DNA from: Monocercomonoides exilis PA203
Taxonomy: Eukaryota > Protista > Preaxostyla
Direction: 5' to 3'
Length of the DNA stretch: 64,000 nucleotides
NCBI GenBank assembly: GCA_001643675.2
Contig: LSRY02000004.1
Location: 372,001-436,000 of the forward strand
Below the pieces are notes generated by a model, which saw only the letters and a program-made list of their open reading frames with translations, was not told where the DNA came from and did no database searches. Shown here piece by piece: positions 5,869-45,047 of the stretch. A program made the position numbers and the translations under genes. Position 1 is the stretch's first letter; every line of letters begins with the position of its first letter.

Positions 5869-17889
<12,021 letters not shown>

Positions 17890-18318
17890 GTGAACAGCCT
17901 TTGTGAATTTTTTGATTATTTTTTTAGTTGAAGACAAATTTATTCTTCTTTTATGAAGATAATTATTTTTGTGGTTTTTTTAATTGGAATTAGTAATTTC
18001 GGTAATATTTTATTTTTCATCAAAATATTTTTACAAGCATTTTATGATAATTTGCATTAATTTTTTGTACATATGACACAAATTAGTAGTTTCGAGAGAT
18101 ATATTTTTTTTGTGTGAAATATCTCTTATTTTCGTTTCTTTCTATTCAAATTATTTTTGTTTTATTTTATATTTATATAAAACGCAGGCTTAATATTGAA
18201 ACAATATTTGGTATATTTTATTTCGGGCATTTTATTTAGTTTGAAAAAAATTATCTATTGAATGAAGAAAATCCATCAGAACAATATTTGCTGCCCATAA
18301 TTATTTGTTCAAATTTTT

Positions 18319-21300
18319 ATGTCATCCTTACGCCCACCAGATTTGGTGGCAATTCCGCTCCCAGTGTCATACCCCATTCGATCATTTATTCTTAATGAAG
18401 CTTCTATTGTTCAGCCTGATATTTTTTCTATCTGCCCAATTTGTGATAAATCATTTTCAATATCAATTCCTGGGATAACTCAGCGTTATAACTGTCATTA
18501 TTGTGGACTTCCTATTTGCAATAAGTGTTTTGTTGTATTTTCTGATAAAGATATCCCTCAGCCATTTGGATATACAGGAAAAAGGTTCCAATATTCATGT
18601 AAATGCTGTTCTGCACTTTATCGTTTGAAGAAATTTTTATCAGTTTATAATTTTTTATTTTCCCCTATAATTATATTTTCGTTAGATCCTGATATGTATT
18701 CGTCAGATGATTTAAAAGAATTGATAAGAAAAAGATTGTCAATATTGGCATATGCTTCATTTTCGCATCCTTCTTTGAAGCAATTTTCATTATCTTTTCT
18801 TCCTCGCTGCTTCAAGCTCCATGAAAGTCACATTCAGTCCTGCAGTGTCCATCCAGAACTTATTTTAAATCGTGTTACAATATCTCTCATTAACTGCTTG
18901 ATTTATCATGAATCGTTCGTTCACCATTACACATCTGCGGGTTCGGATCAAACATCATTTGCAAATCAAGTTGTACCAGAATTGAAAGCACCAGTTCGCC
19001 CGATTTCTCAAACGAAAGAAAATTTGATGGGAACTAATAATCGAAATTCATCAAACATTGATAACGGTCATGTCGTCAACCAACCATGTGGATGTTTCCC
19101 TGTAACTGCTGAAAATATCATTGTGGAGCATTTTGTGAAAAGCGGAATTTTGATTCTTGCTCTTCTTTGGGTTGCGCATTTTAGCCCGATGCAGCCTGTG
19201 AGCTTGCAGTCTGCTCAGAGGCTGCTTAAACTGCGCAGACAGGAAAGAAGAGACAGAGTCCAAAGATTGAATGAAAACGAGACGAATTCGAATTTGGCAT
19301 TCAAACGAATCAAGTGGCGCTACGAAGACGATCTCAGAGACATCAGCAAGGCTGAAGAAATTCTTCAAGCATCAAATGGTAAATGTCATTTATTTTATAA
19401 TATTATTATTATGTTTTATTTATTCATTTGTTTGTTGCGTTTTCAAATATAATTTACACGATTTGAACGATTTTGTGTTATTTCTCCTCTAATTGCTGAA
19501 GAATGGGCCTCGCCAAAGCTCGACCTTTCGTTGATGGAGCCTTCTGTTCTGTTGCTGACATTGCTCCTTCGCACTCCATATGCTTTGTTTGCAGCTGTAT
19601 CATCGCCCACATCATCCCTCACAACTCAGCTTCTTCCTGTCGCTGCTGCATCGCTCATCAACCTCATATCCACAACATATCCCTCTTCTGCAACACCATC
19701 ACCTTCATCTTCTCCATCGCCATCCTCTTCTGCTTCTTCTTCTTCTTCTTCCTTCTTGTCATACGCAACTTCATCTTCCTTCGTTTCCTCCTCATTCACC
19801 TCGCAATATCCGTCACTCAACAATTCCTTAACCGGCCTGCCTCGTCGTCAAACATCTTACTCTTCTCTTAGTGTCGATGTCCGCATCAGCGCTCTTGAAT
19901 GCCTCCATCGCCTCTGCTGGACAGACAGCGGAAGAGACAGACTGGCTGCTCAAGGATTTGCTGTTCCGCTGCTGTTCTTGTTAGCAAGAGCTGAGAGGAC
20001 ATCGCTGAACTCAGAGCTGAGCGACGAATCAAGCGGATTGGACAGAAGAAACGACAAACTTCATTATGCAGAAGAAGACTCTCAGAAGACAGCGCTTTTA
20101 GTGAAGAAAAGCCGCACTTCTTCTTTTCTCCAATCGACCAAGCGGCTTCTGTGGACTGCTCTGCCACACACAGTGTCGATGCCTTTCATTGCGATCACGT
20201 CGATCAGAAAGCGAAGGGGCGTTGTGGAAGAAGGGTGCATATGCACTGGAGGCACACAACGCAGCATTTTGAGTGGAAGGAAGTTGATTGAACAGCAGAA
20301 GAAAAGAAATGGTGGATCAGCGAAAGTGGCTGATAACAAGATAGCACAGAGGCAGAGCAGTGAGAAAAAGAAGGAGAAAGAGAAGGTGAAAGAAAAGGAA
20401 AAAGAAAAGGAAAAGTATAAGACAAATGAAAAAAGAAGTGAGTTTGAAAACAAACAGAGCAGAACGAAAAAGATAGCTCTTGAATCGAATCCACCACATC
20501 CATACTTCATCAACCCTGTGCCATTGCATCCAACAGCCTCTGAAGAAAACACAAGCGAACAAGAGCAGCATGCAAAGGCAGATAACTCACTTGCACAAAG
20601 TGACTATTCAGCTGTGAGTGAAGAGAGCGAAGAGAGCGATGACTGGATTGAAAAGACGGTTTATCCATCGGCTCGCCTTGTTTCGCTGAGAGAGGCACAG
20701 CATCTGATTGAAGGAGATGAGCAAGCAAGGCTGAAGAGGGAGCATTTGATTGTTGCTCGCAAAGAAAGAAAGATCGCAAAAGTCAAAAAAATGATTGTGA
20801 AAGGGGAAAACTTGTCGAATTACTGTGATGTGTCGTCTTCAGAGGAAGATGAACAGATTCCTCAAGAAGACACCAAGACAGAAGAAGCTCCAGTTGATGT
20901 TTCGACAGACTCGCCTTTTCTGTCATCATACATTGAATCAGCATCTCAGTCATTATCGTCACCAACTGCATCTTCCTCTTCTCTGAATTCGACTTCTTCG
21001 TTCTCGTCTGCTTTTGATTCAGCTCGCTATCTCACCTCTCATTCAGCTGCATCTGCCCTTTCTTCCTCCATCTTCACCCCATCGCAACGCAAGCACTTGC
21101 ACCCCATTCGCTTCTCTGCTGCTCAGCTTGACCATCTTTTCTCCGCTCTTTCTTTGCTCTTCTCCTCTTCTCTCTCTGCTTCTCTTGCATCTGGCTCTGC
21201 TGCCACTCCATACAGCAGCACATTGCATTCATTTCCTCTTCAGCTCTCTTCAGTGTTCTTTTCTTTTCCTTCTCTTTCTGTTTTTCAAGACTTCGATCTC

Positions 21301-24300
21301 GACATCTCCTCAGCAATCGACTGTGTTGCTGACTATATCAGCGCATGTGCCGTCAGAAAGTCTGACATTGCACAGTACATTTTTGATGGCTCAGTGAATT
21401 CGCTTGGGACAAATGCATCGAAGGCTCATGAGTCTTGTTCTTCACTACTGCTGACACCGCTGATTCTGCATCTGGCGCATTCAATGTTCTCATTTCTTCT
21501 CTTCTGGCTGTGTGCCATTGAGAGAGAGATAGATGCTGTCAATCTGTTGACATCTGTTCATGACGAAGCACTCCCTGCATTTAGAAGTCCAAAAGACAAA
21601 ATGAAAATAAAAATGATGAATTCAAAGAAAAAGCACCTTGAAAGAAAAGAAGATGAAGGATCAAAACTGAATTTTGACAACAGTTCTGATTCAACCAGAA
21701 CTGATTTCGATGTCAAAACAACTCGTTCTCTTTCATTTTTCAATGAGACGCTCAATCGCTGTGCTTCGCTGCCAGAGCTTATAAGGAATCTGTTGAACAA
21801 CAGCATCCCATCGAACTTCAATCCGATGACTTCTTCTGTCTTTGTCAACTTTTCAAGTTCTTCGTCTCCTTCTCCTTCGAACAAACTATTGGAGAAGGAA
21901 ACAGAGCCAAATAACCAAAGTGAAGGTGTTGAATTGAAAGAAAAGGAATCTTCAATGGAGGCACAAAAAACAGCTTCTGAGACAAAAGAAGAGCCATCCA
22001 TCAAACAAGAAGAGAGTTCACAGGAAGAAAAAGCAGGAAAATCCTCCGGAGATTCTGAGGCTTTTTCAAAACGCAGCACGTGGGGAGGAACTATTGCAGG
22101 TTGGTTCAAACGAGGCGGGGACTCAAAAAATGCAAATAAATCAGATAAAAATAAATACAAAGCGAATAATACAACGGCAACACCAGCTTCTGAGCAGAGC
22201 AATCAAACAGAAGCTGTTGCAGTTAATCCATCAGCTGTGACAATGGCAACAGCAACAACAACAACAGAAGCAACAGAACCAAAAGGATCAAATGCAGTTA
22301 CAACATCAGTTGGCCATTCAGAAAACAAAAAATGTTCACAAGAAAGCACACGAAACAAAGAAGGAGAAGTGAATGATATACCAAAAGTGTTGCTTACACA
22401 AGAAGAGCAAGAAAAAGAATCAGCCAAAGAAATCGCACAGTCACCTGCCAAAACAAGTGGCACTTTCGCTTCTTCTGCCGATCTTCCTTCTCTTTCATCC
22501 TCTCCAGCGTCTTCTCCATCGCCAAAATCTCTCAAAGAACCTTTGACTTATTCGCCTTTCAGTTTCGGCCGTGTTTTTATGCCGTCTTCTGTGTTTGGTG
22601 ACTGCCCTGCACTCGATCCATATTTCTATTTTTCCATTGGCGAGCCTTCATTCAATCCTCATTCTGCTTCTTCGAGCTCATCTTCGGCAGCTCAGCGCCA
22701 AAGCGATGCTTCGAGTTCAAATATGTCATTTGGGGCTGCTTCTCCTCCAGCTTCTTCTTTAGCTATTGCTTCTGCTTCTGCTTCTTCTTCTTCTTCGCTG
22801 TTGAATTCTCCTTCAGCTTCTTATAAGCCCAGTTTCTCATCTGACTATTCATTTGAGGCACATCCTCTGTCGAATCAGCAAAGCATCGCCACATTCAACA
22901 TTTCTGAGCGTTCTTTTGTGCCAAAAAGCAATTACAGTGTTTCACAAGACTATTCACAATCATCTGAAAGCAATCAACATTTTGTTGAAAAATACAAAAG
23001 TTATTCTTCTTCTGCTCTGTGCAACATTCTCAAAACATCGCCTCTTTTCATTCCGATCGAAGGACTGGACATCAAATGGATCCTGTTCCTGTTTTTGGAG
23101 AAGCTCAGCCGTTTGGGTGTGCTGCTCATAGTTGTTATTCGCTTTTGTCATCTTCTATATTTAATTTTCTTTCTTTTAATTAATTATTATTATTATTATA
23201 ATTTCTGAATGTGAAATTTTCACATCTCCTTTTCTTTATCTTCAGCGCCTTCTTTTGTAGAGCGCCACAATCTGCAAGGAGCAATGCACGATTTTGCCAA
23301 GCAGTCATTTGAGCGTCTGAGCCATGTGATTTCGCAGATGCCCCAGCCGCCTTCGGAGCCTCCTTATTCGAAGCACAATCCCTCTCCAATCACAACGTTC
23401 TCTGACCTTCTGCTGAGCAACCTGACACTTGCACTGCTCTTTGAAGATATGTTTGACAAGGAAATTGTGAAGCCATCTGTCGAAAGAAGCGAGCTTTGTG
23501 TCTCTGCATCGTCAGCACTCTTTCCAGAAAAGAAGACAAACACACAAACATCAACAGCTGGATCTGCAAGTGCATCAGCTTCATCATCGTCATCATCTTC
23601 TTCTTCAATAAGCATATTTCATGCGCCAACATCAACGCCATTGCTTTCTGCTCCTTCACATCTTAACAGCGGTATTTCTTCTCTAACTGGTGCCTCTACC
23701 AGAAATTCCAGATCTCGAGCCAACGTTTTATCCGCCTCTCGTACATCTCGCTCAGATGCATCAAAACTTCCTCTTTCTTCTTCAACTGAGTTGGCACAAG
23801 TCCGCATTCAACAGAGTATAAAGACATCGCTTCCCACAAACTCCACACAGTCACTCGCTGCTTACTCGCTTTCCCGCCTGTTTGCGCTGCTCGGCCTGGC
23901 TTTCCAGATTTCTGTTGCTGTTCCGAAGCCTCTGAAAGGAAATGGATCTCAAATTGGTATTAGCAGATGGGATTCATTCACATTGGCATCTCAATCACAT
24001 CTGCATCTTTCGTATTTTGTTCCGCATCTCCTTTTGTCCTCCTATTTCCTCTGTTCTTTGTCGTCGCATTCTGAGAACAAAGGATCACCTGGATACAGTT
24101 CTCAGCAAGCGAGCAAATCGTTTTCTTCTTATTCTTCTGTCATTCCTTATCGCACCCAACGAAAGCCTCATGACATTCTCTTAGACATGATCAAGATGCG
24201 TTCTTTCTCTCCTTTTCCAAACTTTCTCCCTTTCTCGCTGCTCCATCCATCTTTCCTTCCTTCCTTCGACAGATTGCTTTCTTCAGTTCCAAGCAGCTCA

Positions 24301-27300
24301 TCTGATTCAGGCTTCTATTCTTTGCTTCTCAAAGTCGTTTTGTCGTTTGGTGCTTTGCCTTTTCCTCTTGCTTCTGTTTCCATACCCCGCTTTATCACCC
24401 AGCCGGCTTTTCTCCAGCGGCTTTTAGCTTCTTTGTTTGCTTTTCTATTGCAATGGAATGAATCACGTTGTGAAAGCAATCAAAGAGAAGCAGCATCGCC
24501 TCAGCAATCATTTGATAAAAAGAATAGAATTTTAGAGTCACATCAAATTAATCAGACTTTTACTCTTAAACCAAGAGACTCCTCTTCAAGCGAAAAGACA
24601 AGCAGCATACAAGCAACTGTTCAGTTAGAGCCTGAACGGTTAAATATTCCACAAAAAGATCAAAAAATAGAAGACGATGAAGCGAATTTAATGAAATTGA
24701 GCAAATTCTATCCGACTTTTCTGCTCTTCATGGCATCGTTGCCATACGCAGAGCAGCATTTCGAAGTTATTCAGCAGGAAATTTTGTCAAAAGAAAAAAC
24801 AAGTCATACCAAAAAGACAAGAGGAATCAACAAGCTCAAAGAAAAACATTCAATCTCTGACACTCAGATAGGAGTTGCAGAGAGAGACAAATCTGACAAA
24901 ATTTCCAAGGAAGATGAAACAAGCAGCGAAAGTGAATATGTCAGTGATGCAATACAGCTGCAGGCTGAAAGCGACACTGACTCTTCATTGGGTTGTGAAG
25001 AGCCAGCGTATCTTCTGTCAGATGAAGAAGAGGATGACGAGGATGCTGCTTTCTTTAACATCACTGAAAAGAGAAATCAATATCGTTCAAAATATCCCTC
25101 GTCGGCTTCTGTCAAATCATCAGCTGCTAATTCTGCATTGAGAATTAAGCCTGATTCGTTCTTCGACACATTTGAGAAGGAGTCTCTGGCTGTTTCTACG
25201 TTGATCGAGGCAAAATACGGGAAGGAAAAGACCCACCTTCCAGATAACTTGGAAGAGGAAGAGTCGGACGAAGATGTTGTTCAGCTCGCACCGTTGTCTT
25301 CTTCAGCACCTGTTGTACCTGCAGCTTATACAAATTCTTCATATTCACAAAAATTGCAAGGTGTACAAATGTCTGAGAATATTTCAGTGAATGATGGTAA
25401 CTTCCACATGGTTGACAAGCAGAAAGCCAATTCTATTGCATCAAAGAATCTTTCGCACAAGCGGTTTGCAACGACACATCCGCTTTTCGCTTCCTACGCA
25501 CTTAGCAACAGCCAACTGTCAACATATTCGCACTTTTCTGCTGATTCATTCACAAGCCAGGCACGAAATATCTGTCTAACAACATCTCCGTTGATGCTCA
25601 CTCGTCTACCTCCTCATATTGTGCCGTCTCTTCTTGTGGCATATGTCGAATTCTCCCGTCGCTGTGTGCTGCATCGCCTGTATTCGCAGCAGTATGTTCC
25701 TTATGCACTCCGCTCCTTCAGTCAGTTGCGTCTTCCTGATGAGCGTTGCAGTTCATATGAATTTTACACTGCCAATCCATTTTTTGCTTCGACGTGGCTG
25801 ATTATGAAGCAGAAGAGAGAATTACTCTCAGATGAGATGGAAGCAGAGACAAACAGGACGAGGGCCAGAGCATATCTGAAAGAGAGAAGGCAAATGAAAA
25901 AAATGCAGGATATCATCGAAAAGACAGAACAAGCAAATAATTCAGAGGAAGTGAAAGACAATGAGAAGAAAAAGAAGAAGAAGAAGAAGAGAAGGTTGGA
26001 TCTTTTGGCAGCAGCTTCAGAAAATATTGACGACAGCCAGCTGGAAGAAGAAAAGCAGAGGAGTTTGTTCGAGGAGCAGCAGAAGAAGCTGGCTGTTGAT
26101 GAAACAGAGCAGCTGAAATCAAATGAAATTCGTATTCAATATCAATGGAGAAATCACACAGCTTCGTTTAACAGCCAGAAATGGAAAAGTGTTCTGGGAA
26201 TTGACAAAGGTGATGACAACGACATCAACATGTGGAATACTGAAAGAGATGAGGCAGAGCAATATGGGGATGCATTGCTCCACAGCTTTATTAATAGCCA
26301 AGACGTTGGTGATGTTGAATTAAGCAAGCTTCAGATAGATGAACTCAATGCAGAAAAATGCAGAAAAAGTGTGGAAAATGAGCAAAAGATTCGCAATTTC
26401 TTTGTGAAAGAAGAGGACAAATTCCATTATGATCAAATGTTTTATGCATCTCAAGCTAAACAAAATAACTCTTCATCAAGTGAAGCACTTGCAGCCAAGC
26501 CTTCATCATCAAATTCTTCTGACTCTGCCTCAGTTGATACTTTGCACCCACAAACATCTGGTGTTTCTTCTTCTCTGACGAATCATTCATCGGCTGATTT
26601 GTTGTCCACATCAAATGAATGTTCTGAAAGCTCCAATGGAACAGCTGCTATAAATAATTCTCTCATACCTTCAAGCGCAGTCTCCCCTGGCCAAACTTCT
26701 TTGAAAGGAGATGATTCTTCTTCAGCACTTCCAGAAGTCAGTGTCCTTGTCCATTCTCCATATTCCTCTCAATCGCTATACAGAACTCCTTCACCTGTGA
26801 CAACAGAAGAAAAAGCCCAGTGGGACGCGTATTTCACAAAGCCTCCGTCTGAGCTTGCGACTCCTCCAAAGCTCATCACTCAAAACACAGAGCCTCCGAC
26901 AAAGCAGGAACAAGACGAATGGGACAGGTATTTCAGATATCCACCACACAGCGGATTCGATTCAGGTAAAACTCAGCAGTCTCCTTTTGTTCATCGCCCG
27001 CTGCCTCGCCAAATGCAGCCGAAAGAGTCTTTGTCTTCTGCTGTGCCTGAGAGCCTGTCCCATCCCTCGCCTCCATTCTCGACTGTCTCTTCAGACGATC
27101 AGTCTTCACCGCTCAGTGCTGCTGCCACAGTCTCGCCAGACTCGCAGATTTTGGACACAGAAACATCATTTACGCTTTCTCCATCACCTTTCCCCGTTCA
27201 GCAAGTTCCGTTCAGCAAAGATGGTATCTCTTTCCAGTCAGATCAGATGCTTCCAACACAAGTTAGTCAACTATCTTCTTCCTTGGGCATTCCTGGCATG

Positions 27301-30300
27301 TGTGATTATTCTCCTCTTCAAAACAATTCATCTTCTTCTTCTTCTGTTTCCGCTTCTGCTTCTGCCTCTGCCTCTGCCTCTGCCTCTGCCTCAGCATCTG
27401 CTCCTGCATCTTCTTCGAATTCTTTATCTAACAATCTCAAAAGCTTCCTTATCATGCCCCAGCAGGAGATGCATCCATTGGAGCAGACTGCAGACTTCTC
27501 TGGATACGGCGATGACAAACAACTGAGTTTTTATTCTCCAATGCCTTCTCCCCAGTTGTCTCCGTCTCCAGTTCCAGCAACTCCTGTTTCAGCATCTCCT
27601 GTTTGCGGGATAAGCCCTTCTGAGCAAAAAAATGTGAATCAAGCTGAAATAATCTATAGCAATGATTTGAAGCAGTTAATTAAAGAGGAAAGAGAAAGGA
27701 ACCAAGGTGCAACTATACAGTGGGGCTTAACATATGCAACTTCCCAAAAGATTGAGAATTCTGCTTCGCAATCAGCAAAACAGCAAAGTGAGGCAGAAGA
27801 CAAAGTTTTGGATCCAAAACAGCAGAAGAAAGCGGAGAAGCTGAGAAAGAAAGAGCAGAAGGCTTGGAAGAAGATGAAGCAAAGGGAAATGAAGAATTTG
27901 AGCGATCTGATGGATGGCAAAACGAAGAAGAAAGCAGCACTTAATATTGACACCTTTGGTATTAATTCGAGATTAAAAGACGGAGACACTGAATATACTC
28001 CTATTTGTATGATTACGTTTATTTCTTTGATTTTCTTTTCATATTTTATATTGTTTTTATATAATTCATTACATAATTGTTTATGACATTCTTTTTATTT
28101 ATCTTTTTCTCTCTCTATTTATCACTCATTTAGATGATATTCTGCGTCTAAGCTTGAAGATTTTCTGCCTTTTGTGCTCAACTTTGGACGAAGTATCAGA
28201 ATCTTCCGTATTTTCTCTGAATTCTACTCAGAGCATGTCTTCGTTTCATCAAGATAAGCCATCTTCAAGCTTCAATCCTAATGCATCCTTCTATGTTCAA
28301 TCAACATCCACTCAAAATTCTTCACCTTCTGCGTCTTCTTCACAACAGAATAAAATGTTGATGTCTCAGAATTTCTCCCTAACAAATTCTTTTTATTCTT
28401 CATCATCATCATCTTTTTCATCTTTTTCTGCATCTGCTTCAGAACTTCCTCAATGTTCCGTTCTTTCTCTGTTTCCATCCCTTCTGCAAGTTTTTATCCT
28501 CTTTAATCATCTGTTTACGGAGAAAGAAGACAGAATTAATGCGCAATTTGGCTCAACAAAGAAGCAACTGATTTTAAACAACCGTTTTGCTCAGGATGGA
28601 AAGGGAAGTGCAATTCATATGCATTCTTCTGATTGCATTTCTGCAAAGTCATTGTCAACTTTACAAACAATGCATGACTCAGTTGTTTGCAACGAACAGC
28701 ATTGCACTTTATCCGTTCCTCCTCCCCCAAATTCTCACTTCTCTGCATCGCTTATTCAGATGGAGCAGAAAAGGAAAGAGTTGGTTCAGGTCGAACTTGT
28801 CGCAACTTTGAGAGAGCGTATGAAAATACAATCAGAAAAAACTGGGCAGAGCGATTTAGGCAATGAAGAGGACGGAGCATCCACTGAAGATGGGCAGTTT
28901 GAGCAATCAATTGTCGATTTGTATGTCGATCGGGGTGACGGGGTGGATGAGTGTGGCAATGTGTCATTTGACGAAGAAACAACTTTTGTAGTTGCTGATG
29001 ACAACAAACCATCACCTCCAAAGCTGAGCTTCTATCAATATCTATCTCCTTTTTCTCGTGCAAAGCAAGCGATATCACAGAAAGCTAACAAAAATGATAA
29101 AATGGAGCCTTTTACAGGGAAAATAACATGCCCTCCATTGTTTGTTCTTCCTTCGGACGAGTTCTCAAATGCACTTTATCAGCGTTCTTTGCTGTATCGT
29201 CAACTGCTCTACATCTCTTTCCTTAATCATCGCCAGCTCAGTTTAGATGATCGAGTGCTTATGGTTGGATTTATTTGCCTGCTGTGCTCGTCTTTGTTGA
29301 GAAAGATTGAAGAAACGGGAGCGCCTTTGACTCATCTCCTGATCTTCAATTGTTCTTCATCGCCTTCTCCTTTTGCCCATTTGTTCTGTTCGTCTCTCAC
29401 TGAAATGCTGAAGCTTCTTATCCATTCAATCTCAGTTCTTCACACTCATCTTCTTTACATTATTCATCACGACTTGTCTCTTTATCTGTCTGTGTCCTCT
29501 GACTTCTGCCAGCCTGGCTCTGCTTATGCCAGCGATGCAGACAATCTCCAGCCTTTTGGCTGCACGCTGCATCCAGAAGGGGTAAATTTGTTTTCTTCAA
29601 ATGATTTCATCAGCAACATATCTTTTATTGTCAGGTCTCTTGAAGTGAGACTAAAGACTTTCATTCCCAACATGGATAAATGTCTACCACGCAAATCTTT
29701 TCCTAATTTATCGAACTCGCCAACTTATCCTGCTGCTTCTTTTGGGGCAATGTCTTCTTCTGCCAAATCAGGTCTTAACCAGCTGTTCGCCAAATTCGAA
29801 TCTTCTAAAGCATTCGGGTCATCGCCTTCAAGTCCAGGCAAGACTGATTGCTCTACCAAGTCTTCGTATTCGGCTGTTTTCTCGTTTCTTACAGCGCCAA
29901 TTTCTTTGCTTTCCCGATTTCTGTTGGCTGAAATAGACACTCGCGAACAGCTGAAAGAGAATCTATCAAATGTTGTTCTGCAGTCATTCGATGTTTTGAA
30001 GGAAATTGCCATTTCTCCAATAATTCCATTGCAAAAAGCAGTTTTGAACAATGTTGTTGGGTTAGTTATAAGCAAGCTGCGTCATGATGATAACGAAAAG
30101 CGGGACAGATTTGCTGACAGCATCTGGCACGTTCTGTTTAATGCATCTTACATATGCGAAGTTGGAATAAACGAAAGCACAGGCGAAGTGTCCAGTTGGT
30201 GGGTGAATAGCGCATGTGAATCATCCATGTGCAAGGAAAGCAATTACAATTTGCATGAGCCAAATGGCTTTGTTAAGCAAAAGCCAATTGAATTCGGGTC

Positions 30301-31543
30301 TTTTGTCATCCCTCAAACTCTTCGCCCGTATCCGCTCATTTTCCACTGGCCACACTCCGTTTTTGCGAAATACAAAGCTTCGATGCCAACAAGTGATCTC
30401 TCAGAAAAATGTGAAATTGCAAGTGGGCAAAGTGAAATTGTGACGAGTCCTGAAATTTTGGAATTTCCTGACACATCGGAGAAACTATCAGAACAGGACA
30501 TTACCCAGTCTGAATCAACATTTGAGAGCAATTGTTTACAGACTGAGCAGTCGCCTCATCTGTCAACATCTGATCCGTCGTCGATGCTTCCTGAAAGCGA
30601 AACAATCTCTCCTTTTGATGAGAGCATTCCGCTTGAGATATCAGCACCATCTGCTTTTGAAAATGATAAGGTGGAAGATGATGCGTGTATAATAGATGCA
30701 AACAGTGTGTTGATATCAAATGATCTGCATTCTCTGGAGATAACATACTTGTCAATTTTGCTCGTGCTCACTAATTTTGAACTGGAGAATAAGCTTGCTG
30801 ATGCTCTAATATCACAAAGTGTAAATTGTCAAACAGAAAGAATAAAATTCTTGTTTAAATCACATCTCTACAACTTTTTGAATTCTTTGTCTCCTGAAAG
30901 AAAAGATGTCTTGTTTAAGTGTTTGCTTACACATTCCGGAGCGATGATTTGCATAGAGATTCTGACTTCAATGGACAATTCAGATCTTCCATGTATGTTA
31001 TTATTTTCCATTTTTCCTAATTTCTCTTAATATTATTTTTTTTTTCACTTGTTCGATGGAAATTTGTTATTTATTACAGCTATCATGGATTGCATCAGCT
31101 CACTAATTGGTGAACGAATTTCAAGCAGCATTCATCGTGGGTCCGGTTTTTATAAGTTCATTCACGAGCATAGGATGGATTTTGATTCGGAGCAAACTTT
31201 GGCTGATTGTGCAAGATCTGCAATTTATCTTGCATCGACACCAGAAAGCACGACTTCGTTCAATGGATCAACACACACTGAGAATTCGTCATTCGAATGC
31301 CAAGTCTCCAATCATTCGCTTGAAACACTCAACTTCCAGCCATTTCTTTCGTTCTTGAAGCATATTTCAGATAACAAATTATCCTTAATAAATGATATTG
31401 TCCATGGTGTTTGGATGGACTGGGCATATTCTTCATGTAACAGTCATACATCTAATTACGATGCTTCTATTCTCGGATCAAATCTAGATGAATATTTTAT
31501 AACTCCTTTTTCACCATGTGTTGCTCTTCTATGTGCAATTTGA
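18319..31543 (+). CDS. Giant (~4250 aa) protein with N-terminal FYVE-like Zn finger; exons 18319-19378, 19502-~23110, ~23246-28006, 28134-30992, 31080-31543
   Basis: CPICDKSF...RYNCHYCGLPICNKC...SCKCC has FYVE-type Cys spacing. Four phase-1 GT-AG introns link five long ORFs in frame. Intron 2 has alternative donors (23111/23117) and acceptors (23245/23260). Confidence 0.75.
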
Positions 31544-35707: not shown

Positions 35708-37405
<1,698 letters not shown>

Positions 37406-38599
37406 ATAATAATTTTTGAGTATTTATGATAAACCTTTGCGACATACCGACAAAATCCATTATCTTCGACATCTCGACAGACATTAGAATTAAAAAAATC
37501 CAGTTAAAATTTCAAATTTGTTATTAACCATTGAAAAATGAAATAACGATTATTTTGAAAAATTTTGCAAATCAAAAGTTAATATCCAAATTGATTTAGC
37601 AATCAAAAGACTTTTGATTGGGATAATTTTTTAAAAAAATATTAAACTGTAATGGTTTTCGACAGATCGGGTTCATGGGGAGTATTTTGTGTCGAAGATC
37701 ATCATGTCGTTTGAAGCAAATAAGTTTATTATGGATGAAAAATACGATGCGGTATATAGGCAGTTACCAGCTGAACTGAAAAACAGTTTATCTTCTCCTT
37801 CAATTGTTTGCTTCCTTTTCTTCACTTAATAAATATCATTATTTCAAAATCTTATATGCAACTTAAAGATGGATGCATTCAAAGCGAAAATCGATGAGTT
37901 GAATAAAAATGGATGTACTCTTGTATCGTTGGTTCCAGGGAGAACAACAATTTTTTGCCAGTGTTTGTTTTCACTGCAAGATTTTTCTCATCATGATTTT
38001 GATAATATTTTTTATTTGCTTTCAGATTTTAAGCACCCAAACAATTCTGGACAAGAGATTGGAAAAGTTCATTTTGAAGAAGCCAAAGGAAAACTGTGGA
38101 TAGCATACGTACCTGTTCTTGCGGATGGTTCTTTGAAAAAAGACGGTCATTATTACTATTTATGTCCAAATTGCAAATGTGGAATTAACTGTACGTTTTC
38201 TGCAAGGAAAGGAACAAACCGAATTGATGATCATTATTGTTCACTTGTGCATTCAACAACAATTATCCCATATTTAGAAAAACAAGCCTTGCCAAAAGAA
38301 TGCAATTCACGATATATGCAATCTTCATCTCATTTTCAGTTCAACAAATTAATTGAGATGTTTTTGCGTCTTGTTAGTCATTGCAACATTGCATTTTTAT
38401 CGGCATATTCAAATGAGTTCAATGCGTTTATAACTGAAGTTATAAAAACATCTCAGTCTAATCCAACTCTCCATCACACATCAATATTTCCCATTCTTTC
38501 TGCAAGAAAACTTACGTCTTTGATCGAAAAAGAAACAAGGAAAAAGATTGAAGAAAGAAATGAAATTCTATCAAATTCTTCTGTTTCTGTGATGTTTGA

Positions 38600-40075
38600 G
38601 GTAAGAGGGAACATAACGTACTTTTAAAAAAGGATTTCATTTTGAAATCTTCTAAAAGAAATATCAATAATACGTTATTATAAAACTATTTATGTGGTGA
38701 ATGAAGAGATTTAAAAATGCCGAAATTTAAATAAAAATTGATCACACCCACAATTTAATTTATTTTTTGTGCACAAAAATTTTCATTTTAGATGTATTTG
38801 TTATATACATAAATCATGAATTTTTTATTTTTTGAATATTTCCATCATTATGACATCCTGTTTGAATGATTCAAGCGTAGAAATAAGCAAAATGAATGAA
38901 GCTTTCTCTTGTCTTTCTTGTTCTTTCGATTGGCTTATTGAAAACATTCTTCAAAATAAGTTCAAAAGATGTCCAAAATGCAAAAATAAAATGCGTATAT
39001 ATTCAAGATCGGAGACAATGAGGCAATTTAGATGTTATAAATGTGGAAAGGCAACAAGCATTTTTGATGGAACTTCGTTCCGATATTCAAAGATTCCAGT
39101 TAACAAACTTCTTCATATCTTTCTGTATTTTTCTCTAAAATTGAGCATCACTCAATCAAGCATTTTACTTAATGTTAACAGAAAGACATTTGGATTCTGG
39201 TATTCACATTGCAGATCTATTTCTTCAAAAATTATAATGGAAAATTTCGAACCTATTGGGGGAGAGGGTCATATCGTGGAAGTCGACGAAGCAATGTTGA
39301 GAAAAAGAAAACTTCAAAAATGATGGAAAAAGACACAAGTTTGGCTTTTTTGAGGAATAGAAAGAAAGCGCGAAGATGGTGGAGGAAGATTTTTTATTAT
39401 TCGCGTGAAGAACAGAAGCAGAAAAACCTTATTGCCTGTCATTGAAGCTAACATCAAACCAAAGACAACAATTTATAGTGATGAATGGCGTGCTTACAAC
39501 TGTCTAAATGATTTCAACTTCACTCATATGACTGTGTGTCACAAATATCATTTTGTTGACCCAATTACAGGTGTTTGTACAAATGGAATAGAGGGTTTGT
39601 GGTCAAGGTTTCGTGCGTTTTTGCCTAGAACTGGTGCAAAAGACAAATACATTGATGATTTCATTGCTAATTTCATGTTTCATTCATCAAAGAATTATAC
39701 TTTTAAAAAATTTGTCAAAGAAATAATGAACACACTTCCCACAGTTGATAAAGGAGACGATGATGAATCAAGTGATGCTGATGAAGATGATGATTCAATG
39801 ACCCCACTAGTGGATGACACTGATTCTGACAGCAGCAGCAGCAGTTTTGGAGCAGGAGATGGCTTATCTGCATCTGAGTATGAGGATTCATAGAAATTTT
39901 TGTCCCACAATTGTCTTTTTAAAATAATTTTTTTGTGAATTTTTATTTTCTCAAACACTTTTAAATCTCTTCATTCACCACATAAATAGTTTTATAATAA
40001 CGTATTATTGATATTTCTTTTAGAAGATTTCAAAATGAAAGCCTTTTTTAAAAGTACGTTATGTTCCCATTCACC
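38600..40075 (+). mobile_element. Merlin (IS1595/IS1016-related) transposon, 1476 bp
   Basis: 117-bp TIRs (38600-38716 and 39959-40075, 4 mismatches) starting GGT; perfect 8-bp TSD ATGTTTGA (38592-38599 and 40076-40083). Confidence 0.95.
38850..39893 (+). pseudogene. Merlin/ISXO2-like DDE transposase with two in-frame TGA codons
   Basis: CPKC...CYKC Zn ribbon, IGGEGHIVEVDE, IYSDEWRAY, TVCH...FVDP.TGVCTNGIEGLWS. One frame throughout, with TGA at 39321 and 39351. Confidence 0.9.
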
Positions 40076-42568
40076 ATGTTTGATGGAGGACTTGTGGCTG
40101 GAAAAAAATACATAGTTATTTCTGTTGTTGCATTACAAGCAAATGCACATCCTGTTTTTTGGGGACTTCGAAAACATTGCGCAACTTCAGAACAATACTG
40201 CGAGCTTGCAATGAATATTATGAAAGAGATGAAGGAAATAAAATCAGTGGTTAGATGTTTCTGTACTGACGGCTTAAAATCTCAGAAAATTGCGATTGAA
40301 AACATTCATGAATCATTGAAAACATATACAGCAGATTACGTTGATTATGATATTATTCCGTTCTTTGTTTACTGCAACAACCACTTGATAAACCTGATTG
40401 TAATACACTTGTTTGACTCTGACAAATATCTGAAAGATTTGAAGGAAACCATTGTCCAATTTTCAAAGAATTACAGAAAGCGTGCAACAAAGGATATATC
40501 GAAACCCAAGTGTCCAGTTTTTATCTCAACACGTTGGCTTTGTTTATATAATATTTGTTTTTTTATTAGAAAAAACTCTGATTTAATTCTCGATTTAAAT
40601 TTATTAGATAGATCAACAATAACAGATGTAATTAAATGCAAAGTTCTACTGTTCCCTCTTCAAACAATGCATCTCATTTTTGAGGATGATAAAACAAAGC
40701 TTGGTTCAGTATTTCAATGTATTTTACAAGCGTATGCTCAGTACACATGGCTATCTGAACTTGAAATATTTAAAGATGAAAAGTGGAATCAGAACATAAT
40801 ACAATGCATGGTTTTGTTACACAATTATTTTTTTGCAGGAGCAAGAGGAAATTTTCTTGCTCTTGCATTTTCATTAACGCCAGAAGGTTCGACTTTGTAC
40901 AGACAAGGCATGTTCATGAAATCTTTCTCACAAAAATTGGAAATTTTGAAAAATCTACACTCATCAAAAAATACCATTTCCCACAACGAAATATCCTCCC
41001 GTGAAATTGAAAGCGCTGCATCATCATCGTCGCAATCTGAACAAAACTCAGCAAAAACAATGCACTTCAATTCATTGACGTATTTGCCACCCTCACAAAA
41101 ATCTATATGTTCATCTGAAAATATTTATCTTGCGACGAATCATTCATTGGAATCATTCTCGAATTTTTCTGCCAAAACAACAAATCATCAATGTCAGTCA
41201 ACTCATTTTCAAAGTGAAACAACGGTTTTAACATCTTCACAAATGTTAAAGAGGGATCACCTTCAAAATGTTTCACCATTTAGCGTCAACGAATTACGAT
41301 TATCAATAAATAAATACAAAAAGGAAACACAACAAATAAATTCAATACCTCACACAGTTACATCTTTATTCACCAATCCTCTATTATCGACACAATTTTT
41401 ATCACCACTTGGACCAAAATCATCAAATGATAATATCCTTTCAACCATCATAAAATGTCTTGAGGAGAATTGTGCTTTGAATACATCATGTGAAGAAAAA
41501 GATGACGAAGAAATTTATAACGAGGATTTTGAAGAAATTTTCGGACTTGTTGAAGCTGAACAAGAGTCAGAAAATGACGAGTTTGATGAAACAAGGCTAT
41601 CCTCCAGTTTAGCATCCATTTCACCTTCGTTTTATCCCACTCGATTGGTTGATGCATCTTCAAAGCTCAGCGAAACAAACGATACAAACAGAATGGATGT
41701 TGAAAACACAGAAATTGGATCAAGCTGTTCGGAAGGAATAGAGGAGGAGGAAGTGGAAGAAATAGGTTCAAGCGGAAAAATTGATGATTCAAATATTCAG
41801 ATCACAGAAGAAAGAAAAAAATGCTTGTCGCAAATATTGCAGGCAATTCATATGGATTGGTTTGCAAGAATAAAAAGCGGATTCGTATCATATGTGAAGA
41901 AAGTCTTGTTTAATCAATCAGATCAACTTCAATCCGAGTGCATATCCTTGCTTTCTTATTTTCTGATTGATTATCATCCTTCGATTGTGCAGGACAATCC
42001 CTTTATTTATTACTTCGAAATTGGAAAATACAGAACAGTGCCTAATATTTATGCAAATATTTGTTACTCTCTAATCGTAGCTCCTGTAAGTGAATCCTCA
42101 TGTGAACGTCTTTTTTCTCGCCTGAAAAGAATCATTGGAGAAAGAAGATACTCCTTAAATCTGGACACACTGAATGCGTTGTTAATTTTGTGAAACGTTG
42201 ATGTTCATAATGTTATTTATCAATTACATTTTTTACTAAGTTATTATTTTTTTATTCTAATTTTTGACACATTCACCGATAGTTACAGATAACAAATTTA
42301 AGTTGTTTCTCTTGACTTTTGTTGTTCATGAAAGAGGAATAAAAACAATATAGGCAAAGTGAATAACTTCAGCGAGAGCAAGGAAAAAATAACAAATGAA
42401 GAAAAATGGGATGAATCTCTTTTCGAACATTTGATAATTACAACTTCATAATTGACCGTGTTGCTGGTTGAATAGGTCTTTTAACGATAATGGATTGTAA
42501 GTTGAAATGTTATCAGCACAAGATAACGAAGCCTTGAACATTTTTGCGAGAAGCATTAAATGCTTTGT

Positions 42569-43830
42569 TCATCTGGACTCTTTGCTATGCCATATTAGTC
42601 TCCACTGCAGTCTTTTCTTGTGTTGCATCTTCTTTCTGATCAGTAGAAATTCGTATTGAATACAGAAAGCATTGCTGCACCAAGCAGAAACCGCTGGACG
42701 AGCACGCGCTTCTCCTCTACGAGCGAGAATCTGGTGTTGGCGTTGTGTTCTTGTCACAACCTGAAAGTATTGAGCAGTGTGCTTTGCCTGCCGCTCATAG
42801 TCTTGGATTCTTTTTGCTTGATTTCTTCCATTAGGCATTAAATGCTTCTTATTTTGAAACGGCTTTTGAACAGTTAAGCTATATTGTTTCAACATTCCAA
42901 TCGAGAACTCCACTGTCTTCTTCGTCCCATACTTCTTCGCTCCATTCAACAGCTCCGGCGCCTTCCACCTCAGACACTCTTTCTTGTAATCGTCCTCGTC
43001 TTCAAAGGCAGACGAGGGCAGAGAGTCACTGCCATCATCATCGTCGTCATCACTGGCAGAGGTTACGACTGTTGAGGATGAGACAGAGGAGGAGTCTGAG
43101 TCGTCAGAAGATGAGCAGTCGGAGTGGAGGGCAATGCAGATAACCATGTGCTCCGAGAATAATACAATGTGTGGACTGAGATTGGCCAGCGAAGGCAATT
43201 CTTTTTCTTCATCAAACGAGTGGAGTGCGAGATTCGCCATCCAGAACAGGATCTGTGCAGCTGTTTGTTCTCTCTCCTTCAATGAGCTAATTGCCATCTC
43301 CTTTGTCTTGTTCAGCCCATGCAACAGCATGAACAGCGAATCCCTCAGATCCACAATCAGCTTCTCATGTGGAGATGAGCAGGCCATTGCATCCACCAGA
43401 TTCGACATCGACGAGGTTGTTGGACATAAACTCTCTAATCGAACAAATGTGGAATCTGAGTCAGTTGTTGAAGTGGATGAAATGGATGAAATTGATGGTG
43501 ATGGTGTTCTCTTCCTTATCTCTTCCTCCTCCTCCTTCTCCAGCACCCATTCGGGGATCTTGTCTGAATCTTTTCCCAAAATATATTCAGTTGATCCACT
43601 CTCAGACAGAAGATGCTCTGATGACTCCGAATGTCCCAGGCTTTTCTTATACACCCTCTTTTTGATCCTTTCTTCATTCTTCTTCTCTGCTTCCCTCTCA
43701 TCTCTCCTCCACTGCCCTCATGCGAAATCTTTTTTGTAACCATCTCAAATGTCTTTGGATCTTTTCTCATTGTATCATTCTCAATAACTTCACATCTCTT
43801 CGTTTCTTCTGAGATATTTTCTCTAATCAA
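42569..43830 (-). pseudogene. Frameshifted, 5'-truncated fragment of a multicopy kinase-like host family, inside the hAT
   Basis: LANLSPHIVLFSEH, ECLRWKAPELL and FSIGML resemble degenerate kinase subdomains VIb-IX. Frameshift near 43730 and scrambled C-terminus. Family recognised from memory of Monocercomonoides proteins. Confidence 0.65.
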
Positions 43831-44477
43831 ACAGTTGAAATAAATAAGAAAATTTGCAGCAAAAACATTAATAATTAATGCAACTTTCAAACACAAGAAA
43901 TCCTTATTTTTCTTTGAAAATATGAACCATTGTACCATCATCAATTTTAAATTGCCTTTATTTCATAAAATCAACATAAGTCTATACCAAAACAATACAA
44001 TGATATTTCAAAAACACTAATATATTGCACAAACTTTCAAAAACCTTTTTTTTTCAGATTTGTATTAAGTCAAGCTCATTCGGCCACCACTTGTGAAATA
44101 TGCGAATGAGGAAAATTATCAAACAATAAGAAATGATAATTCATTTTAAAAAATACGAAACTTAAATAATTGTTTAAAAAAAGAATATCTTGAAAGAGAC
44201 CTAAATGAAACTTGCGAGAATTAAAAAACATGCAATCCGCCTCAAATAAATGTTTCAACTATATATGAAATTCGAAGTTTACAGCATTTAATACATCATG
44301 ATTCGACTGATAAACAATTAACAATTTTGATCACACCCATACCAATGAAAAATTTATTGTATAATTATGGATAACAAGATCTTTGAAAAAACAATCACAA
44401 TTCATTAAGAAAAAATTTTTTGTTATTATGTTATTCGTTTTATTTTATCGAATTGAGCAACACAAGCATTCATTCAC

Positions 44478-44480
<3 letters not shown>

Positions 44481-44533
<53 letters not shown>
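44481..44533. repeat. Poly-A tract (~53 nt)
   Basis: Seen directly, ~50 bp inside the right hAT TIR. Confidence 0.95.
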
Positions 44534-44537
<4 letters not shown>

Positions 44538-45047
44538 TCGACACAAGATTTTATTATCGACCGACACGAACGTCACAAATTTTATATGTCGCAAAGGTTT
44601 AATTTATAAATCTATGCTTCAAATTTTTTGAGTCTATTTTTATGAAAATTGACTTAAGGAAAAAAGGAAAAGGACAAATAATTTCTCTTTATTATTCGAT
44701 TAAAAAAGCAAAAATCTTATTATTGATAATGATGTGAGTAAAAAATTATGAGGTATGTATTTGTTTTCGAAATTTCATTTTCTCCATTTGAATATTCAAT
44801 TCGAATATTTGTTGATTGCATATTTAAAATAAGCACAAAAAGAAAAATCAAACAAATACATAAATGAAAAAATTTTTCATTTATCATTCAAATCGACTTT
44901 CGAATCAACAATAATGACTTTTAACTTCGAAAGAAAAAATTTTTGTTTGTGATAAAAAGTCACTGATTATCAATTCGTGGAAAAAAGATATGGGTGTTTA
45001 TTTTTGAAATCATGTTTTTTCTATTAAATTACATGGCTTTAATGTTT

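Follow-up and report, generated by a model that had tools for sequence, protein, structure and literature searches.

The locus examined here raises the question of whether a DNA transposon that has landed in the coding sequence of another transposon can be removed from the transcript as an intron. Within a 64-kb window of the Monocercomonoides exilis genome (the window being the whole stretch of DNA that was analysed), a Merlin element lies nested in the transposase gene of a hAT element, and an earlier note had proposed that the terminal inverted repeats (TIRs) of Merlin supply an in-frame donor and acceptor through which the hAT transposase could be restored. Our analyses argued for a simpler account: the locus is quite likely a plain, gene-breaking insertion of Merlin into hAT, and productive splicing of Merlin is unlikely. 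Positions are given in window coordinates, and stranded features lie on the plus strand unless stated otherwise.

The host hAT element spans 37430..44601, a total of 7172 bp including the nested Merlin and the extra copy of its target site duplication (TSD), and 5688 bp without both. It is bounded by perfect 17-nt TIRs (TAAACCTTTGCGACATA at both ends), and its boundaries are the points at which similarity to two paralogs (C39 and C18) begins and ends. The flanking 8-bp TSDs, ATTTATGA on the left (37422..37429) and ATTTATAA on the right (44602..44609), match each other at 7 of 8 positions, and the C18 paralog carries a perfect 8/8 TSD. The transposase frame is divided by Merlin into a first part at 37869..38599 (243 codons plus the GA of an Asp codon, within ORF 37869..38627) and a second part at 40084..42193, which ends at the stop codon and belongs to ORF 40061..42193. 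The former ORF is 94-97% identical to its paralogs, and the C-terminus of the latter matched Dimer_Tnp_hAT (PF05699; 9.1e-05, 22.6 bits against a cut-off of 21.4), a domain also detected in the paralog. An Rfam scan of positions 37000-45000 detected no RNA family.

The uninterrupted hAT protein was represented by a proxy, the empty-site paralog L056:3364-4575, and the two exon ORFs were searched separately. Sequence searches of PDB and Pfam gave no match over the catalytic core, which was instead characterised by an exhaustive representative search and by fold comparison. In an alignment of 46 sequences, D244, D306, C341, H344 and R394 were invariant and W395 was nearly so; C99, C108, H122 and C124, all within the N-terminal 243 residues, were near-invariant in relatives. 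The predicted model (pLDDT 80.7) placed D244 in beta-1 (strand 238-248) and D306 just past beta-4, and its top 10 structural matches in PDB were Hermes chains (E about 1e-7). As modelled, the core is a Hermes-like RNase H fold in which the first and second Asp are conserved. Like Hermes and other hAT transposases, that of the window combines a Hermes-like fold and a dimerisation domain at its C-terminus with the invariant D, D, CxxH and RW positions, and its element has short TIRs and an 8-bp TSD. The family is very divergent, however, and the element contains, in addition, an antisense ORF and a long stretch of poly(A).

The nested Merlin (IS1595/ISXO2-type) is 1476 bp long (38600..40075) and reads in the direction of the hAT ORF. 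Its left TIR (38600..38719) begins GGTAAGAGGG and the reverse complement of its right TIR (39956..40075) begins GGTGAATGGG; together they make up a 120-nt inverted repeat that is 96% complementary, with ends starting with GG (GGTAAG.../GGTGAAT...). The transposase pseudogene (38850..39893) contains DDE_Tnp_IS1595 (PF12762, ISXO2-like; 1.4e-15, 58 bits against a cut-off of 27), which was found at 5e-17 in a sister copy, and shows a weak match to Zn_ribbon_IS1595. An intact transposase ORF is absent from the window copy, in which TGA stops interrupt the frame at 39321-23 and 39351-53; both stops are private, as both are GGA in the sister copies C14 and C28. C14 has a TGA of its own where the window copy reads CGA, its longest ORF being 250 aa, and no intact transposase ORF was seen in C28, which shows a 1-nt gap in the alignment. 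The sister copies are 97-98% identical to the window copy, each with its own 8-bp TSD, and perfect 8-bp TSDs were found in four copies of the family. By its domain, its TSD (8-9 bp being expected) and the GG start of its TIRs, the window copy belongs to the Merlin superfamily, and by its stops it is a defective member. Among its 24 private differences, 16 fall within one 163-nt patch; this clustering, and the fact that a cut-and-paste element brings earlier mutations along, led us to reject an estimate of insertion age from these differences.

Lopes et al. (2021, PLoS One, PMC8101967) described more than 100 Merlin copies from Monocercomonoides sp. PA203, in at least 7 families; their TSDs are 8 bp long, their TIRs open with GG and they encode a DDE_Tnp_IS1595 domain. 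The window Merlin agrees with them in organism, superfamily, 8-bp TSD, GG start and domain, but differs in TIR length, which is mostly 23-29 bp in the published elements and 120 nt in the present family. Introns or splicing are not mentioned in that paper (PMC8101967).

At the insertion site, the Merlin TSD ATGTTTGA stands at 38592..38599 and again at 40076..40083, while it occurs only once in five hAT paralogs (one each on C39, C27 and C21 and two on C18), where the empty site reads ...GTGATGTTTGATGGAGG.... These five paralogs prove the 8-bp TSD and bear out the nesting of Merlin in the hAT transposase gene. The insertion interrupts the first catalytic Asp codon in the midst of strand beta-1, and it is indeed the second TSD copy that supplies this Asp, as had been suggested: the GAT at 40082..40084 is D244 of the paralog ORF. 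The interrupted hAT frame meets a stop 27 nt into the Merlin TIR, and the window copy therefore encodes no full-length transposase. The sequence of events that we favor is that a defective Merlin, from a family of low copy number, would have been cut and pasted into a single member of the multicopy hAT, duplicating 8 bp and splitting the first catalytic Asp codon within beta-1 of the RNase H-like core, and that this hAT copy would thereby have been broken.

On paper, a splice that repairs this damage does exist. The left junction reads TTT GAG|GTAAGA, and since the GAG at 38598-38600 is a codon of the hAT ORF 37869..38627, the candidate 5' splice site GTAAGA (38601..38606) opens with a GT in phase 0. 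The right TIR reads CCTTTTTTAAAAG|, with the AG at 40053-40054, and continues as TAC GTT ATG TTC CCA TTC ACC ATG TTT GAT GGA, an open stretch in the frame of ORF 40061..42193; this candidate 3' splice site (AAAAG, 40050..40054) holds the sole AG of the right TIR in phase with the donor. Removal of 38601-40054 (1454 nt) would leave 1 + 21 + 8 = 30 nt, made up of a G, 21 nt of the right TIR and the second TSD copy, and would place 10 extra residues directly before the invariant Asp in beta-1. The earlier note was accurate to the base on all of these points: its donor, acceptor, open continuation and 10-residue arithmetic were reproduced. That the spliceosome actually removes Merlin from the GT at 38601 to the AG at 40054, the TIRs acting as intron ends and the hAT transposase regaining its full length with EYVMFPFTMF added ahead of the catalytic Asp, is nevertheless decidedly improbable. 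The presence of both sites in phase speaks for it; the evidence on the other side concerns chance, the host splice signals, the protein and the other Merlin copies.

First, a frame-restoring GT..AG pair within the insert was found in 49% of Markov-random 1476-nt inserts and in 56% of random window segments placed at the site, and such a pair alone is at chance level. The extended donor G|GTAAG[A/T] is non-random, and its conservation in three young Merlin copies (GTAAG[A/T] at the same position in C14 and C28) is consistent with splicing; yet it is a family-wide terminal motif, not one specific to this copy. G|GTAAG is the conserved terminal heptamer in at least two Merlin families of the genome, and in the second of them GGTAAG[A/T]GGG stands at both ends, with no AG in the last 30 nt. 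The transposase presumably recognises this heptamer or cleaves there. The +30-nt arithmetic, for its part, is given by the TIR sequence and the 8-bp TSD and shows no sign of having been selected. The remainder is open in all three phases, and the Merlin family would therefore be frame-neutral wherever inserted, a family property that can be counted in favor of splicing. With a plain insertion, the AG that lies 21 nt inside the right end would be just part of the palindromic TIR sequence.

Second, the candidate sites were set against nine hand-curated, frame-checked host introns within the 64-kb window. A tenth candidate (1276-1344) was dropped when its frame check failed, and automatic intron calling, by ORF pairs with composition scoring and by boundary hexamer enrichment, was discarded as too noisy. 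Eight of the nine introns combine a GT[A/T/G]TG donor with a YAG acceptor, in agreement with the earlier remark that host donors are mostly GTTTG/GTATG. The exception, at 19379-19501, is forced to a GTAAAT donor and an AAG acceptor; an A at +4 of the donor and an AAG acceptor therefore fall within the host range, which lends splicing some support, and the statement that several host introns use AAG acceptors stands for this one forced case while the other eight are YAG. Both the donor and the acceptor proposed for Merlin are accordingly of the host's minor type, although G|GTAAGT is the ideal partner of the canonical U1 5' end. HSP70 genes, located in the genome by a Pfam search, were intronless. 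As to length, all nine curated introns measure 47-266 nt and the published mean for M. exilis is 119 nt (PMC8767320), so that the would-be Merlin intron, at 12 times the host mean, is far beyond host size, just as the earlier note had cautioned.

The RNA between the two sites adds further obstacles. In both the MFE and the centroid folds, the two TIRs pair over about 115 bp, and the AAAAG acceptor, which lies with its T-tract within this duplex, would thus be buried. Pairing of the TIRs would also draw the candidate donor and acceptor close together, a point against the reading as a plain insertion. Eight AAUAAA/AAAUAA hexamers, poly(A) signals taken for M. exilis from PMC8767320, lie on the sense strand within 38601-40054. 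Furthermore, a competing acceptor, TTTTAG (40018..40023), which was graded stronger than the proposed AG and lies 31 nt upstream of it, does not share the frame of the 38601 donor. This acceptor is of the host YAG type and has a branch-like TTGAT motif 13 nt upstream, and a GTTTGA at 38594, within the TSD, fits the host donor type. If transcription ran through this copy, cryptic splicing might, for example, join either donor to 40023 and leave the gene broken all the same through a frameshift or premature stop: the 38594/40023 pair is phase-compatible and hits a TAA at 40049-51, and from the 38601/40023 pair four codons are read before a TGA. Such non-productive splicing would likewise be hindered by the length of the intron, the pairing of the TIRs and the poly(A) signals inside, and we consider it improbable.

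Third, the hAT protein and the hAT copy itself speak against the proposed splice. The 10-aa insert would fall in the middle of beta-1, adjoining the catalytic Asp, and the earlier caution that it lies beside the active-site strand was well placed. The window hAT copy carries 14 private substitutions (10 nonsynonymous, 4 synonymous), about what is neutral; the hAT is a multicopy, neutrally drifting transposon, and there is no sign of selection on this redundant copy. Merlin aside, its ORF is the sole close copy free of stops and frameshifts, a point against the plain insertion that is nevertheless unsurprising with 14 private changes in all. Expression of the second part alone was considered as well: the 710-codon ORF 40061..42193 has an ATG in the right TIR and keeps the Asp and the entire C-terminal part, and read-out transcription from Merlin could yield an N-terminally truncated hAT protein. 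That protein would, however, be without the N-terminal 243 residues, including C99, C108, H122 and C124, and protein database searches put no such protein on record, so that we regard its expression as exceedingly improbable. Exact-protein look-ups of both exon ORFs and word-index searches with exon 2 and with the paralog core gave no match, and no protein of the size expected from splicing was in the protein database, results of little weight as the genome's own records may be missing from it.

Fourth, we surveyed nine full Merlin copies with TSDs, belonging to two Merlin families, among the fetched loci. The window copy is the one of the nine with long open frames on both sides of its insertion site; the other eight have AT-rich flanks and no ORF through the insertion site, including a family-2 copy (L011) with a 240-codon frame upstream and only 13 codons downstream. 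No second insertion into an ORF was thus seen among these copies. Together with the foregoing, this leads us to infer that Merlin is not productively removed from any transcript, and to return to a plain nested insertion as the preferred reading.

Splicing of TIR elements is nonetheless established elsewhere, which is the general argument for the proposal. In maize, Ds/dSpm alleles carry exonic TIR elements that are spliced from host exons via cryptic donor and acceptor sites in their termini; removal is imprecise and leaves extra in-frame codons, it has been shown on RNA, and the alleles are leaky alleles of host genes. For Merlin, by contrast with this RNA-demonstrated case, splicing exists only on paper. 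Introners are transposons that generate spliceosomal introns and come from many transposon superfamilies (Gozashti 2025, PMC12130899; also Huff 2016; Gozashti 2022); Merlin is not named in the main texts of these papers. Like the window Merlin, they are TIR/TSD elements in coding sequence with a GT close to one terminus and an AG close to the opposite one, leaving a residue divisible by three. Introners, however, are defined by numerous, nearly identical copies that sit in unrelated genes and are annotated and spliced there as introns about as long as the host's own, whereas the window Merlin is the one exonic copy in nine, would make an intron of 1454 nt against a 119-nt mean and interrupts a gene that is itself a transposon's. 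With respect to the hallmarks of introners, a GT and an AG supplied by the element are present and in phase, but both are of the host's minor type and the length is 1454 nt against 47-266 nt locally, and many similar copies as introns of unrelated genes were not found among the nine Merlins. A broader proposal, that the conserved GGTAAGT-type ends of M. exilis Merlins are real 5' splice sites and that exonic Merlins are removed as long introns, with TIR pairing aiding and a 30-nt in-frame footprint left behind, would amount to an introner-like mechanism, derived from Merlin, in a metamonad and would here rescue the transposase of another transposon; we hold it to be highly improbable.

If splicing were true, Merlin and the metamonads would join the transposon lineages able to create introns, and a transposon insertion would be tolerated within the gene of another transposon. 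As the evidence stands, the locus is a well-resolved nested DNA-transposon insertion and not a new mechanism. In this AT-rich genome, about half of random inserts give an in-frame GT..AG pair, and introns drawn on paper in transposons therefore need RNA evidence. For the repeat annotation of M. exilis, the locus is useful in that it documents a Merlin family whose TIRs are 120 nt long and fixes the exact boundaries of a divergent hAT family.

The locus is demonstrably an ordinary nested insertion, in which a defective Merlin element interrupts a hAT transposase gene at a codon for an active-site residue. The outer hAT element (37430-44601) has perfect 17-nt terminal inverted repeats (TIRs) and an 8-bp target site duplication (TSD) agreeing at 7 of 8 positions, the C-terminal domain of its transposase is Dimer_Tnp_hAT, and the element is multicopy, with at least six paralogs of 77-97% identity. 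In the window sequence, ATGTTTGA borders the Merlin element on both sides; five hAT paralogs carry the empty site ...TCTGTGATGTTTGATGGAGGACTT... with a single ATGTTTGA, which proves both the Merlin insertion and its TSD. An antisense ORF inside the hAT, downstream of the transposase (42572-43717, minus strand, 382 codons, GC 0.46), had no Pfam match and may represent either a second gene of the hAT element or a captured one; paralogs on contigs C39 and C18 have ORFs of 268-281 aa at the equivalent position. A 53-nt poly(A) run (44481-44533), whose length differs among paralogs, lies inside the hAT right before the right TIR. A polyubiquitin gene (36141-36830, minus strand) comprising three perfect repeats of ubiquitin lies to the left, ∼600 bp from the hAT, and the plus strand carries two very large genes, one a single open frame of 3427 codons with GC 0.49 (7606-17886) and the other ∼13 kb long and interrupted by at least four short introns (18301-31540).

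The inner element (38600-40075) encodes a DDE_Tnp_IS1595 domain (1.4e-15) preceded by a weak IS1595 zinc ribbon and thus belongs to the Merlin superfamily, known from Monocercomonoides PA203 with more than 100 copies, at least seven families, 8-bp TSDs and GG-starting ends (PMC8101967). Each of its TIR arms (38600-38719 and 39956-40075) spans 120 nt, and the two are 96% complementary. Comparison with the genome (82,301,135 bases, 101 contigs) revealed two sister copies, on contigs C14 and C28, with 97-98% identity to the window copy, older copies with 77-89%, and a second family of ∼1485 bp with 64-68% (L011:1199-2683, L013:1309-2792, L014:1308-2792, and L015:1309-2796, with perfect 8-bp TSDs); every full Merlin copy was flanked by a perfect 8-bp TSD of its own. 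The defective window copy carries in-frame TGA codons at 39321 and 39351 that are both GGA in the sister copies. A single 163-nt patch (39293-39455) holds 16 of its 24 private differences, including both premature TGA codons, with ∼10% local divergence against ∼0.6% elsewhere in the element, and may be a gene-conversion tract from a diverged copy. A comparison of loci L004-L007 with window 38600-40075 showed that, relative to the transposase ORF, the terminal heptamers GGTAAG[A/T] and GGTGAAT have exchanged ends between young (window, C14, C28) and older (C34, C27) copies. Additionally, a 634-bp element (L015:625-1258) has inverted ends of the GGTATAATCCGAAGATATC type and an 8-bp TSD whose two copies agree at 7 of 8 positions; this element may represent a Merlin-like MITE.

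The uninterrupted hAT protein was represented by a natural empty-site paralog ORF (L056:3364-4575, 404 aa). Its core had no match in Pfam and PDB sequence searches and no relatives in a word-index protein search; an exhaustive search with the paralog found 124 relatives. D244 (the D of MFDGG), D306, C341, H344, P388, and R394 were invariant in a 46-sequence alignment. The AlphaFold model (pLDDT 80.7) displayed the RNase H order of elements, with D244 within strand 238-248 and D306 right after strand 299-305, and its top ten PDB matches were all Hermes transposase chains (E ∼1e-7). Taken together, the alignment, the model and the Hermes matches showed that the earlier note was right that the catalytic Asp is supplied by the second TSD copy; in the predicted fold, the Merlin insertion splits the middle of beta-1.

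The same note had proposed that Merlin may be spliced out of the hAT transcript, and its reading of both junctions was confirmed exactly. ORF 37869..38627 ends in TCT GTG ATG TTT GAG GTA AGA, with GAG at 38598-38600, so that the GT (38601-02) falls in phase 0; at the right end, GCCTTTTTTAAAAG, with AG at 40053-54, is followed by TAC GTT ATG TTC CCA TTC ACC ATG TTT GAT GGA, which is open and shares the frame of ORF 40061..42193. Removal of 38601-40054 (1454 nt) would leave 1 + 21 + 8 = 30 extra nt, the ten residues claimed, because GT stands at position 2, 21 nt separate AG from the opposite end, and the TSD is 8 bp. When 1476-nt inserts (2000 Markov-random and 2000 random window segments) were placed at this site, 49% of the former and 56% of the latter contained a frame-restoring GT..AG pair, rising to 84-87% with flanking sites permitted; such a pair alone is not beyond chance. 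Read by eye, the retained 22 nt contain no stop in any of the three frames, as could well happen in a sequence of this length. The extended donor is non-random, but as a property of the family rather than of the window copy: the same end reads GGTAAGT in C14 and GGTAAGA in C28, and older copies have GGTAAGT at the opposite end. Since the second family (L011, L013-L015) has GGTAAG[T/A]GGG at both ends, although it lacks AG in the final 30 nt, a GGTAAG terminus is common to Merlin families in this genome, and the heptamer is best read as a conserved Merlin terminus.

Host introns were hand-curated within the window, requiring long open frames on both sides and agreeing phases. Eight passed (47-266 nt, GC 0.19-0.28), with donors GTGTGC (twice), GTATGA, GTATGT, GTATGC, GTTTGC, GTTTGA, and GTTTGT and YAG acceptors in all eight, agreeing with introns of the oxymonad Streblomastix, which have A/U/G at +3 to +5 and a pyrimidine before AG (PMC1501061). 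A ninth (19379-19501) is only possible as GTAAAT...GAAG, so donors with A at +4 and AAG acceptors occur in the host as a minority, the type to which the candidate GTAAGA donor and AAAAG acceptor of Merlin belong. Further features also count against productive splicing. Host introns average 119 bp, calculated over 35,345 introns in the ONT assembly (101 contigs, ∼82.3 Mbp; PMC8767320), and the candidate intron has 12 times that length.

Of five AGs in the right TIR, the last alone is in phase. A host-type TTTTAG with a TTGAT branch-like motif lies at 40023, 31 nt upstream of the candidate acceptor; with donor 38601 the joined frame meets a TGA stop four codons later, and with the host-type donor GTTTGA in the TSD (38594) it meets TAA at 40049-51, as read by eye. 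Non-productive cryptic splicing of the hAT/Merlin transcript through such sites is possible yet improbable. In predicted RNA, MFE and centroid folds alike, the two TIRs pair almost perfectly into a stem of ∼115 bp enclosing the AAAAG acceptor and its T-tract. The candidate intron also contains, on the sense strand, eight of the hexamers AAUAAA and AAAUAA used as poly(A) signals in M. exilis (PMC8767320). We infer that both the stem and these signals weigh against productive splicing. In-frame rescue of the transposase by splicing 38601-40054 is improbable, slightly more so than the cryptic splicing.

Leaving Merlin aside, the window copy is the only close hAT paralog free of stops and frameshifts; every other one carries a 1-nt deletion or stops of its own. 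The 14 private substitutions of the window copy (10 nonsynonymous, 4 synonymous) are close to neutral, so selection is not required to account for its open frame. Nine TSD-bearing full Merlin copies were compared, and the window copy alone has long open frames on both sides of its insertion site; most of the others have flanks of 21-30% GC. One second-family copy (L011:1199) lies in an open frame of at least 240 codons, 13 codons short of its end.

Plain disruption of the hAT transposase gene by Merlin is, in our judgment, probable. That TIR elements can be spliced out of exons is well established, with maize Ds/dSpm as an example. At least half of the transposon superfamilies have given rise to introners (PMC12130899). 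If true, splicing of Merlin from the hAT transcript would be a further instance of this already known behavior of TIR elements.
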